A stretch of DNA of 64,000 nt from Rebecca billardiae RCC1528. Its lineage: Eukaryota; Protista; Haptophyta. Below are positions 35,156 through 38,080 of the stretch, in pieces. The stretch lies in contig OZ251226.1 in the NCBI GenBank assembly GCA_965240325.2, positions 620,001 through 684,000 on the forward strand, in the 5' to 3' direction. The notes under the pieces are model-generated. The model searched no databases and was not told the origin of the DNA. It worked only from the letters and a program-made list of their open reading frames with translations. Numbering within the stretch: the stretch's first letter is position 1; every line of letters begins with the position of its first letter. The translations under genes and the position numbers were made by a program.

Positions 35156-38080
35156 ATGGACTCCTTCACGACCGAGGCGCACAAGTTGCTCACCGAGGCG
35201 CTCGCCAACGCGGAGCAGGCGGGCAACTCGCAGATCGAGACGGTTCACGTCGCCGCCGTCGCCTTTAGCCGCACCACGTTCGGCAGGTCGCTCGTCACCC
35301 TCGCAGGCGCCGAGCCGACAGACGTGACGGCCGCGCTGCAGGCGGCGTGCGCCAAGCTGCCCGTGGTCTCGCCGCCGCCCGACGAGGTGCGCGCGAGCAG
35401 CGCGCTGTCGAAGGTGCTCCGCGCGGCCGACTCCAAGCAGCGCGCCGCCAGCGCGCCCAAGGCCACCGTCGAGCACCTCATCCTCTCGCTCCTCGACGAC
35501 TCGAGCGTGTCCAAGGCGCTGGCGGGCGCGGGCGTCACGCCCAAGGCGCTCAAGGAGGCGCACAAGAGCGCGCGCGAGGCGCCGGCGGGCGCCGCCGCGC
35601 CGCAGGCGCAGCAGTTTGAGCACCTCGCCCAGTTCGGCGTCGACCTCCTCTCGCGCGCGCGCGACGGCAAGCTCGACCCGGTGATCGGTCGCGACGAGGA
35701 GATCCGGCGGTGCGTGCAGGTGCTGCAGCGGCGCACCAAGAACAACCCGGTGCTGATCGGCGAGCCGGGCGTGGGCAAGACGGCGATCGTGGAGGGGCTC
35801 GCGCAGCGCATCGTCTCGGGCGACGTGCCGCACTCCCTCGACTGCGCGCTCTGGTCGCTCGACATGGGCGCGCTGGTCGCGGGCGCCAAGTTCCGCGGCG
35901 AGTTTGAGGAGCGCCTCAAGGGCGTGCTCGACGAGGTGAAGGGCGCGGAGGGGCGCGTGATCCTGTTCATCGACGAGCTGCACCTGATCATGGGCGCGGG
36001 GAAGGCCGACGGCGCGATGGACGCGGCCAACCTGCTCAAGCCCATGCTCGCGCGCGGCGAGCTGCGCTGCGTCGGCGCGACCACGCTCGCCGAGTACCGG
36101 CAGCACATCGAGAAGGACGGCGCGCTCGAGCGGCGCTTCCAGCCCGTGCACGTGGGCGAGCCGAGCGTCGACGCGACGATCTCGATCCTGCGCGGGCTGC
36201 GCGAGAAGTACGAGCACCACCACGGCGTGCGCATCCAGGACGCCGCGCTCGTCACCGCAGCGCAGCTCGCCGACCGCTTTATCTCGGGTCGGTTCGCGCC
36301 CGACAAGGCGATCGACCTGGTCGACGAGGCGTGCGCCAACGTGCGCGTGCAGCTCGACTCGAAGCCGGAGGAGATCGACCGGCTCGAGCGGCAGATGCAG
36401 CAGCTCGAGATCGAGGTGGAGGCGCTCAAGAAGGAGAAGGACGACGCGTCCAAGCGCCGGCTCGAGGCGGCGCGCGCGTCGATCGCCGAGCTGCACGACA
36501 GGCTCACGCCGCTGCGCGTGCAGTTCGAGGCGGAGCGCGGCGGCGTGCAGGAGCTCAAGGCGACGCAGGCCAAGCTCGACGCGACGCGGCTCAAGCTCGA
36601 GCAGGCGCGCCGCGCGCGCGACACGCAGGCCGTCGCCGACCTCTCGTACCACGTGATCCCCGAGCTGCAGGCGCGGCTGGCCGAGCTGGGCGCGCGCGCC
36701 GAGCGCCGACGCGTCGACGCGTGCGACGAGCCGCACGTCCGCGAGCTGCACGCGCGGCTCGTCGAGAAGCGCGCGCGGCTCGAGGCGGCGGAGCGCGCGG
36801 GCGACGCGGGGCGCGCGGCGGACCTGAAGTACGAGGTGGTGCCCGAGCTCGAGGAGCGGCTCAACGAGGAGCTCGCCGCGAGCGAGCGCAACAGGGCCGA
36901 CGCGGCGGGCGCCGGCACGACGAGCACGCTGCTGGAGGAGACGGTGACGGCCGAGCACGTGTACGCGGTCGTGAGCCGCTGGACGGGGATCCCCGTGCAC
37001 CGGCTGTCGCGCACGCAGCGCGAGCGGCTGCTGCACCTGGCCGAGCGCCTCGCCGAGCGCGTGCTCGGCCAGCGCCCCGCGGTCGACGCCGTCGCGACCG
37101 CCATCCAGCGCGCGCGCGCCGGGCTCGCGCGCGCTGGCGCGCCCGCCGGCTCCTTCCTCTTCCTCGGGCCGACCGGCGTGGGCAAGACGGAGCTGGCCAA
37201 GGCGGTGGCGGCCGAGATGTTCGACGACGAGAAGTCGGGCGTGGTGCGAATCGACATGTCCGAGTACATGGAGCAGCACGCCGTCGCGCGGCTCATCGGC
37301 GCGCCGCCGGGGTACGTGGGCCACGACGAGGGCGGCCAGCTCACTGAGGCGGTGCGCCGCCGGCCGTACTGCGTCGTGCTGCTCGACGAGGTGGAGAAGG
37401 CGCACCCGCGCGTGCTGGACGTGCTGCTGCAGCTGCTGGACGACGGGCGGCTCACCGACGGCCACGGCCGCACCGTCGACTTCCAGTCCGCCGTCGTCGT
37501 GCTCACCTCCAACCTGGGAGCCGAGGCGTTGCTCGACGCGGCGGCGCGCGGCTCGCCCGGCGGCTCCGCCGACGCGCGCGCCGCCGTGATGGACGCGGTC
37601 CGCCGCTTCTTCCGGCCGGAGCTGCTCAACCGGCTCGACGACGTGATCGTCTTCGACGCGCTCGGCGCGGCGTCCCTCGAGCAGATCGTGCGGCAGCAGG
37701 TCAAGGCAGTGGGCGAGCGGCTCGCCGAGCGCGGCGTCGAGCTCGAGGCGACGCCCGCCGCGTGCGCGTTCGTGCTGGCCGAGGCGCACGACCCGCGGAT
37801 GGGCGCGCGCCCGCTCAAGCGGTACATCGAGAAGCGCATCGTCACCGAGCTCAGCCGGATGATCCTCGCCGACGAGCTGCCCAACCACACCACCGTTACG
37901 ATCGACACGGACGCGGGCGGCAAGCAGCTCACCTACCACGTTTCCGCGCCGCGCAACCATCGCGCGAGCGTGCTCCTCGACGCCGATGCGGACGACGCGG
38001 CCAAGCGCGCCAAGGTCGCCCGCGGGCTGCCCGCGCACGACTCGGACGAGGGCTACGAGCACGTCGGCATGGAGGAGTGA
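35156..38080 (+). CDS. HSP104: Cytosolic Hsp104/Hsp101 (ClpB family) disaggregase
   Basis: N-domain, [13 protein letters not shown], Walker A motifs GEPGVGKT and [16 protein letters not shown], coiled-coil M-domain and acidic C-terminus. Confidence 0.97.

Follow-up and report, generated by a model that had tools for sequence, protein, structure and literature searches.

Hsp104/ClpB is a hexameric double-AAA+ motor that pulls polypeptides from aggregates together with Hsp70. Its M-domain is the on/off switch of the machine and the site at which aggregates are handed over from Hsp70, and engineered changes in motif 2 of this domain lead to hyperactive, "potentiated" disaggregases. Here we describe a cytosolic-type Hsp104 gene of the haptophyte Rebecca billardiae RCC1528 in which motif 2 of the M-domain is encoded twice in tandem. 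The gene is located at positions 35156-38080 of a stretch of 64,000 nt (assembly GCA_965240325.2, contig OZ251226.1, positions 620,001 to 684,000 of the forward strand; from here: the window). All coordinates are those of the window and residues are numbered from the Met codon at 35156.

Motif 2 consists of the second half of helix 2 plus helix 3 and binds the nucleotide-binding domain (NBD) of Hsp70/DnaK. The isolated motif-2 peptide of Mycobacterium tuberculosis ClpB (residues 467-518) binds in a 1:1 ratio with a dissociation constant of ~79 μM, and the substitutions Y504A or L496A in this ClpB abolish DnaK binding (PMC8209680). Moreover, M-domains repress the motor through head-to-tail contacts that link motif 1 to motif 2 of neighbouring protomers (PMC4023160). 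The loss of motif 2 de-represses the motor, both in ClpG and upon deletion of motif 2 from Hsp104 (PMC7785292).

Compared with canonical Hsp104/Hsp101 proteins (yeast 5vy9, Calcarisporiella 6d00, rice ClpB1 9ip0), the window protein has the same domain order, that is Clp_N, NBD1 with the M-domain, NBD2 and D2-small, at 50-57% identity. Helices 1-3 of the M-domains superpose at 1.5-2.8 Å and the Tyr of motif 2 is invariant. It differs from them by an extra motif-2-like hairpin of ~61-67 residues after helix 3, by the replacement of three core Leu residues in the first copy and by the sequence KFRG instead of KYRG in pore loop 1. ClpG/ClpK and ClpC-type Hsp100s are likewise natural length variants of the Hsp100 regulatory coiled coil, but motif 2 is absent there and doubled here; ClpG works without Hsp70, and Hsp104 is potentiated when its motif 2 is deleted (PMC7785292). 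By its second motif 2, the window Hsp104 departs from all studied members of the ClpB/Hsp104 family.

Motif 2 occurs twice in tandem

Both copies of motif 2 lie in frame within a single open reading frame (ORF) and follow each other with a period of 61 aa:

36536-36718, + strand: repeat unit 1, 61 codons, the canonical motif 2, comprising the second half of helix 2, the turn and helix 3 (BLASTP; hidden Markov model (HMM), 67.8 bits)
36719-36901, + strand: repeat unit 2, 61 codons, the extra, diverged copy of motif 2 (BLASTP; HMM, 54.1 bits)

A BLASTP comparison of the two 61-aa units yielded 25 identities over 51 positions (49%), without gaps and with E = 2e-8; at the DNA level, the copies are ~60% identical. 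When the protein was aligned by HMMER with the Calcarisporiella Hsp104 (6d00), residues 4-523 matched chain residues 6-522 and residues 528-918 matched chain residues 468-851. Because both pieces cover chain residues 468-522, motif 2 was matched twice. In addition, a single-unit motif-2 HMM was run on 241 fetched homologues, giving one match in 222 and two matches in 13; these were the window protein, 11 members of its algal family and a protein from persimmon.

These results bear out a first-pass annotation, which had proposed a ClpB/Hsp104 with a tandem duplication of motif 2, and the duplication is far beyond chance. The first peptide quoted there begins at nt 36545. The two Tyr codons are found where they had been placed, at 36647-36649 (Tyr498) and 36830-36832 (Tyr559), 183 nt or 61 codons apart, with both peptides in frame in the same ORF. 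Also as proposed, the copies have diverged and nevertheless both retain the core A-D-L-x-Y-x-x-[IV]-P-E-L. Structural alignment with solved M-domains identifies copy 1 as the canonical motif and copy 2 as the additional one, which is placed where the canonical M-domain ends, before the chain re-enters NBD1.

Bearers and age of the duplication

We searched 5.8 billion protein clusters with three queries: the M-domain region, the full-length protein and a profile of the M-domain plus NBD2 built from eight bearers of two copies. Each search returned the identical seven two-copy clusters, P0001-P0007, and no bearers beyond these among the 5.8 billion clusters. Bearers scored 213-249 bits versus 126 for the next match with the M-domain region and 997-1021 versus 695 bits with the profile. 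With the full-length query the ranges were 1013-1298 bits for bearers versus at most 1031 for others, the lowest bearer, P0002, being a fragment of 730 aa. The objection that such a duplication might be common among algal Hsp101 proteins does not agree with a count of seven clusters. A search of a 1.84-billion representative library with the two-copy profile gave no match at E ≤ 1e-30, a result that cannot serve to count bearers because these are not cluster representatives at 50% identity.

Named members of the two-copy clusters are Diacronema lutheri KAG8470956.1 (Haptophyta, Pavlovophyceae) and, from the Chlorophyta (Chlorodendrophyceae), Tetraselmis chuii A0A7S1T4A5, an MMETSP transcript, and the T. 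suecica "heat shock protein 100" AYF56515.1. P0004 is an MMETSP transcript, too. According to the citing passage in PMC12732369, the HSP100 gene of T. suecica was cloned and measured by quantitative reverse-transcription PCR (Sathasivam & Ki 2019). Both copies are thus present in transcript- or cDNA-derived orthologues (T. chuii, T. suecica), which speaks against the possibility raised earlier that one copy is spliced out of the mRNA. Two Logan contigs and the genome of D. lutheri likewise hold the gene as a single exon with both copies; this genome has 73% GC, and 45% of its genes consist of one exon (PMC8379373).

With 61-69% identity to each of the other bearers, the window protein comes from none of their organisms. 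In a whole-protein tree of 107 homologues, from whose alignment the duplicated columns had been removed, the eight bearers group in a single clade with a support of 100 in the Shimodaira-Hasegawa-like approximate likelihood-ratio test (SH-aLRT), divided into two subclades (99 each). One subclade contains the window protein, P0001, P0005 and Diacronema, the other one Tetraselmis, P0004, P0006 and P0130. The two-copy M-domain is shared by the Diacronema and Tetraselmis orthologues within this clade, which differ from the window protein by Phe (Diacronema) or His (Tetraselmis) instead of Tyr at the aromatic position of copy 2. In a tree of the repeat units, all copy-1 units form one clade and all copy-2 units another (98 each); therefore, the duplication is older than the split of the two bearer subclades. 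Judged from these sequences, it is a single ancient in-frame duplication of 61-67 codons that was kept in a small clade of algal Hsp104 proteins. The first-pass annotation had regarded the protein as a natural variant. The duplication is indeed real, but it is not unique to this genome and represents an old trait shared with Diacronema lutheri and Tetraselmis.

Single-copy homologues in our sampling included those of the diatom Cylindrotheca, Chlorokybus, Mesostigma, land plants, choanoflagellates, amoebozoans, fungi and kinetoplastids. A constrained tree uniting the bearers with streptophyte Hsp101 proteins was not rejected by the approximately unbiased (AU) test (p-AU 0.665), its likelihood being above that of the quick free tree. 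For this reason, an origin in the green lineage followed by transfer to pavlovophytes is possible.

The duplicated motif 2 was found described neither in the open-access literature nor in the records of the Diacronema and Tetraselmis orthologues, and a broad paper on HSP100 evolution mentions neither Tetraselmis, haptophytes nor an M-domain insertion (PMC12283024). The sequences of two orthologues are already public and their duplication is apparently undescribed in the open-access literature.

A search of the organism's own genome covered the 72 Mb assembly with its 41 contigs. Besides ClpC-like genes, it revealed one additional ClpB-type gene on contig C7 and another on contig C3, both with a single motif 2. 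In the tree, a split with a support of 100 puts the C7 and C3 paralogues with the bacterial/organellar proteins and leaves the window gene within the clade of eukaryotic cytosolic proteins. On account of this position of the paralogues, the two-copy protein is the only cytosolic-type Hsp104 detected in the genome.

Structure, conservation and possible roles of the extra copy

The AlphaFold2 model of the full protein, for which an alignment of 107 rows served as input, has a mean predicted local distance difference test (pLDDT) of 90.2, with values of 92-97 across both copies of motif 2. Modelling of the M-domain alone (pLDDT 92.4, predicted template modelling score 0.76) left the five helices unchanged from the full-protein model:

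36368-36430, + strand: helix 1 of the M-domain, residues 405-425, part of motif 1 (AlphaFold, pLDDT >90; superposes on solved M-domains)
36443-36613, + strand: long helix 2 of the M-domain, residues 430-486, its C-terminal half being the outgoing arm of copy 1 (AlphaFold; superposition)
36623-36721, + strand: helix 3, the return arm of copy 1, residues 490-522 (AlphaFold)
36731-36799, + strand: outgoing helix of the extra hairpin, residues 526-548 (AlphaFold, pLDDT 92-97)
36806-36904, + strand: return helix of the extra hairpin, residues 551-583, bearing Tyr559 (AlphaFold)

Residues 7-123 of the M-domain model (402-518 from the Met) superpose on the Hsp104 of C. thermophilum (5zui; Z 11.9, root-mean-square deviation (rmsd) 2.3 Å over 117 residues), on yeast Hsp104 (5vy9; rmsd 1.5 Å over 114 residues) and on DnaK-bound M. 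tuberculosis ClpB (6w6e, chain residues 409-518). As the superposition on solved M-domains ends with copy 1, a full canonical M-domain is made up of helix 1, helix 2 and copy 1, to which copy 2 comes as an addition. Copy 2 (model residues 128-186) resembles long coiled-coil hairpins of the antiparallel kind, for instance the V-ATPase stalk (3aon_A, rmsd 1.9 Å over 59 residues) and 5knc_G (Z 8.0), and is confidently predicted as an additional antiparallel helical hairpin. A four-helix bundle formed by both copies, as in weak matches of the vinculin/alpha-catenin type (Z ~6), was unsupported: in an exhaustive structural search, residues 128-186 matched only hairpins of two helices, and no bundle spanning both copies was retrieved.

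The two copies differ in their conservation, with 22 positions of copy 1 and 14 of copy 2 invariant across the eight bearers. The Tyr, Ile and Pro residues of the copy-1 core are invariant in all 12 aligned proteins. Tyr498 is conserved to at least 90% in the alignment of 107 sequences and is equivalent to E. coli Y503 and M. tuberculosis Y504, which contact the NBD of Hsp70/DnaK. In copy 2, the motifs K-R-x-R, R-A-x-D-x-K and L-E-E-x-L are retained among bearers. Its frame, helix pattern and invariant residues have been kept across lineages with saturated synonymous sites, without insertions or deletions inside the helices. The duplicated unit corresponds to the autonomous DnaK-binding module of M. 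tuberculosis ClpB (compare PMC8209680). The position equivalent to Leu-496 of that protein, 8 residues before the Tyr, is occupied by Thr or Asn in every bearer's copy 1 and varies in copy 2.

Copy 1 has changed as well. At positions 470, 477 and 490 all bearers have Thr, Ala or Asn, where 63-68 of 99 single-copy homologues have Leu, and Val was gained at positions 493, 500 and 520 in all bearers. As read from the alignment, the hydrophobic core of the copy-1 wing is remodelled after the duplication, and these changes point to a co-adaptation with the insert.

We consider it likely that this is the organism's only cytosolic-type Hsp104, to which one ancient duplication added a copy of motif 2, that copy 1 is canonical and that copy 2 is a constrained accessory blade tuning the regulatory switch. 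In this course of events, an in-frame tandem duplication of 61-67 codons would have placed a second motif 2 after helix 3. Copy 1 would perform the standard Hsp70 docking and head-to-tail repression, and copy 2 would tune the switch, either by an extra weak contact to Hsp70 or by an extra contact within or between M-domains.

Several points limit the case for an accessory regulatory blade. The aromatic residue of copy 2 varies across the eight bearers (Tyr in four, Phe in three, His in one), its Pro is replaced by Val or Ala in two members, and with 47-52% pairwise identity copy 2 is the least conserved segment of the M-domain. Ratios of nonsynonymous to synonymous substitution rates (dN/dS) were uninformative for both copies when the window gene was compared with Diacronema and with P0006, because dS is depressed by third-position GC contents of 0.98 and 0.905 in one pair and saturated or undefined in the remaining ones. 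The confidence of AlphaFold in copy 2 rests on only the 8 sequences that cover it. The predicted complex of M-domain residues 400-600 with the NBD of the organism's own cytosolic Hsp70 (L009:1468-2637) scored 0.11 against a mark of 0.34, which is evidence neither way. Finally, no RNA from this organism was found: the best public sequencing run holds at most 7% of the sampled words of the gene, and the runs that matched are soil or other metagenomes and metatranscriptomes, probably matching in conserved stretches of ClpB.

Four other explanations were weighed against the accessory blade. Copy 2 might be a second true docking site, as the first-pass annotation had proposed, so that two Hsp70 NBDs would be bound per protomer with raised avidity or a lower activation threshold; we regard this as possible, at a rather low probability. 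It would fit that copy 2 spans the segment matching the DnaK-NBD-binding residues 467-518 of M. tuberculosis ClpB (PMC8209680), that it keeps the core A-D-[LI]-K-aromatic-x-x-I-P-E-L-E-E, with the Tyr kept in the window protein, and that it is predicted as a motif-2-like hairpin. This view is weakened by the Phe in 3/8 and the His in 1/8 bearers in place of the Tyr and by the variable position equivalent to Leu-496; the complex prediction speaks neither for nor against it. Of the "two Hsp70-binding tyrosines" of the first-pass annotation, both are present as Tyr in the window protein, but family-wide the residue in copy 2 is Tyr, Phe or His.

Alternatively, copy 2 could act as a repression element, a look-alike of motif 2 that touches motif 1 or NBD1, whether in its own or in a neighbouring protomer, and strengthens or re-wires the head-to-tail belt of M-domains, with the motor held off more tightly until Hsp70 arrives. 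In the repressed state motif 2 normally touches motif 1 of the neighbour (PMC4023160), and because the loss of motif 2 de-represses in ClpG and in the Hsp104 deletion (PMC7785292), a gain might have the reverse effect. It would also suit such an element that the two copies pack against each other, as the remodelled copy-1 core suggests. A repression element nevertheless appears unlikely to us.

It seems still more doubtful that copy 2 is a neutral helical insert, tolerated because a surface coiled coil is cheap to keep. Its low conservation, with neither Tyr nor Pro invariant, would agree with neutrality, as would the sporadic occurrence of similar recent duplications elsewhere, in a ClpB1-like protein of Diospyros lotus and in a fragment from a metagenome-assembled genome (MAG) of Propionibacteriaceae. 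However, copy 2 has stayed in frame, free of helix indels and with 14 invariant residues across two subclades with saturated synonymous sites, and copy 1 changed in step with it. An artefact, be it an assembly duplication or a copy that is an in-frame intron removed from the mRNA, is barely credible even though RNA from this organism is not among the public runs, since a collapsed or expanded repeat is excluded by the divergence of the copies (~60% DNA identity), independent genomes and transcript-derived sequences hold both copies, and both are conserved at the protein level.

The gene, its surroundings and related repeats

The ORF extends from 34955 to 38080 on the + strand and its initiator Met was placed at 35156, based on homology and the starts of orthologues. 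The further features of the gene are:

35156-38080, + strand: complete, intronless coding sequence of a cytosolic-type ClpB/Hsp104/Hsp101 disaggregase, 974 codons plus stop (ORF list, Pfam, own-genome search)
35156-35581, + strand: N-terminal Clp_N domain, residues 1-142 (Pfam PF02861, 40.4 bits; AlphaFold helices 6-141)
35618-36355, + strand: NBD1, the first AAA+ module, residues 155-400 (Pfam AAA, 86.8 bits, and AAA_lid_9; alignment)
37142-37642, + strand: core of NBD2, the second AAA+ module (Pfam AAA_2, PF07724, 215 bits)
37661-37903, + strand: ClpB D2-small domain (Pfam PF10431, 76.3 bits)
37976-38077, + strand: acidic C-terminal tail of low confidence, residues 941-974 (pLDDT <50; sequence)

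All five Pfam domains (Clp_N, AAA, AAA_lid_9, AAA_2 and ClpB_D2-small) exceed their cut-offs. The own-genome search with the Hsp104 gave a match of 100% over residues 1-975 with zero stops. The protein begins directly at the Clp_N domain, without an N-terminal targeting extension, and the linker at residues 143-152 after this domain has low AlphaFold confidence. Two AAA+ modules are present, with the Walker A sequences GEPGVGKT in NBD1 and GPTGVGKT in NBD2. Pore loop 1 of NBD1 reads K-F-R-G, with Phe at residue 246 (35891-35893), where K-Y-R-G is usual. The Tyr at this position is conserved to at least 90% in the 12-sequence alignment; the window protein retains an aromatic residue there and has G-Y-V-G in the pore loop of NBD2, so that aromatic pore-loop residues are found in both rings. 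The closest solved relatives are rice ClpB1 (9ip0, E 6e-282), the Calcarisporiella Hsp104 (6d00/6azy) and bacterial ClpB. A fold search with the full-length protein matched only ClpB, Hsp104 and ClpC, and ClpC scored below ClpB/Hsp104 in sequence and structure matches; this bears only indirectly on the ClpP-docking IGF/IGL loop, whose absence sets ClpB apart from ClpA and ClpC. By every feature tested, the protein is a member of the ClpB/Hsp104 family.

The window is very rich in GC, with 0.59-0.80 per 2 kb. Codon bias is extreme in the Hsp104 gene (35156-38077), where the GC content at third positions is 0.98; the Diacronema orthologue has 0.905 there and P0006 0.70. A perfect 16-bp palindrome, ACTTTTCCGGAAAAGT, which contains TTCCGGAA, the TTCnnGAA core of a heat-shock element, is located at 34976-34991, 165 nt 5′ of the Hsp104 ATG. 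Across the window, matches resembling heat-shock elements occur at chance level (4 found versus 3.4-3.9 expected from shuffles).

Elsewhere in the genome, three near-identical genes for cytosolic Hsp70 proteins of 656-659 aa ending in IEEVD were found at C12:1307891-1309711 (L009), C12:2372837-2374657 (L011) and C25:208258-210078 (L010), two of which look identical at both ends. Contig C41 (57777-59930 and 88810-90600; loci L005, L006 and L013) carries a ClpC-like ORF starting with MFERFTEKAIK and a DnaK-like match; the presence of clpC-like and dnaK-like genes suggests that it is a plastid genome of the red-algal type. Taken with the kinship to Diacronema and the high GC content, this would agree with a haptophyte-like host.

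Tandem repeats of the segment comprising the C-terminal half of helix 2 and helix 3 also occur in the Diospyros lotus ClpB1-like protein P0171 (969 aa) and in the Propionibacteriaceae MAG ClpB P0418. In contrast to the algal trait, these are independent, recent and near-identical repeats in single records and not a conserved family trait. The second Tyr of P0171 is a Ser, and P0418 is partial, on a contig of 1107 nt. Both may be recent events or artefacts of gene models or assembly.

The top matches of the two-copy profile in the 1.84-billion library, with up to 96 bits, were the four proteins P0312-P0315 from ENA metagenome assemblies (P0312 at L020:1668-4490). They are Ser/Lys/Arg-rich and of low complexity, have no AAA+ domain and belong to no Pfam family. 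Each of them possesses 2-3 stand-alone motif-2-like hairpins with the core A-E-R-x-G-D-x-x-R-A-x-D-L-K-[YF]-G-A-I-P-[DE]-L, which may be a portable Hsp70-binding module.

We see a small but real chance that the extra hairpin of the window Hsp104 is a working second regulatory module, which would give each protomer a docking place for one more Hsp70, with up to twelve in a hexamer, or serve as a built-in motif-2 decoy competing against copy 1 for either motif 1 or Hsp70. If true, this algal disaggregase would have an activation threshold unlike those of all studied Hsp104/ClpB proteins, and the repeats in P0312-P0315 would be the same portable Hsp70-binding module used elsewhere.

The known natural variation in these proteins runs toward the loss of motif 2, as in ClpC and ClpG, and its conserved doubling across two algal phyla goes the other way. 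That one clade unites a pavlovophyte haptophyte with a chlorodendrophyte green alga may also mark a transfer of genes between algae. For the disaggregase field, the duplicated motif 2 is of moderate interest: it provides a natural test of the number of Hsp70 contacts per protomer, of the tolerance of the repression belt for an extra blade and of the portability of the motif-2 hairpin.

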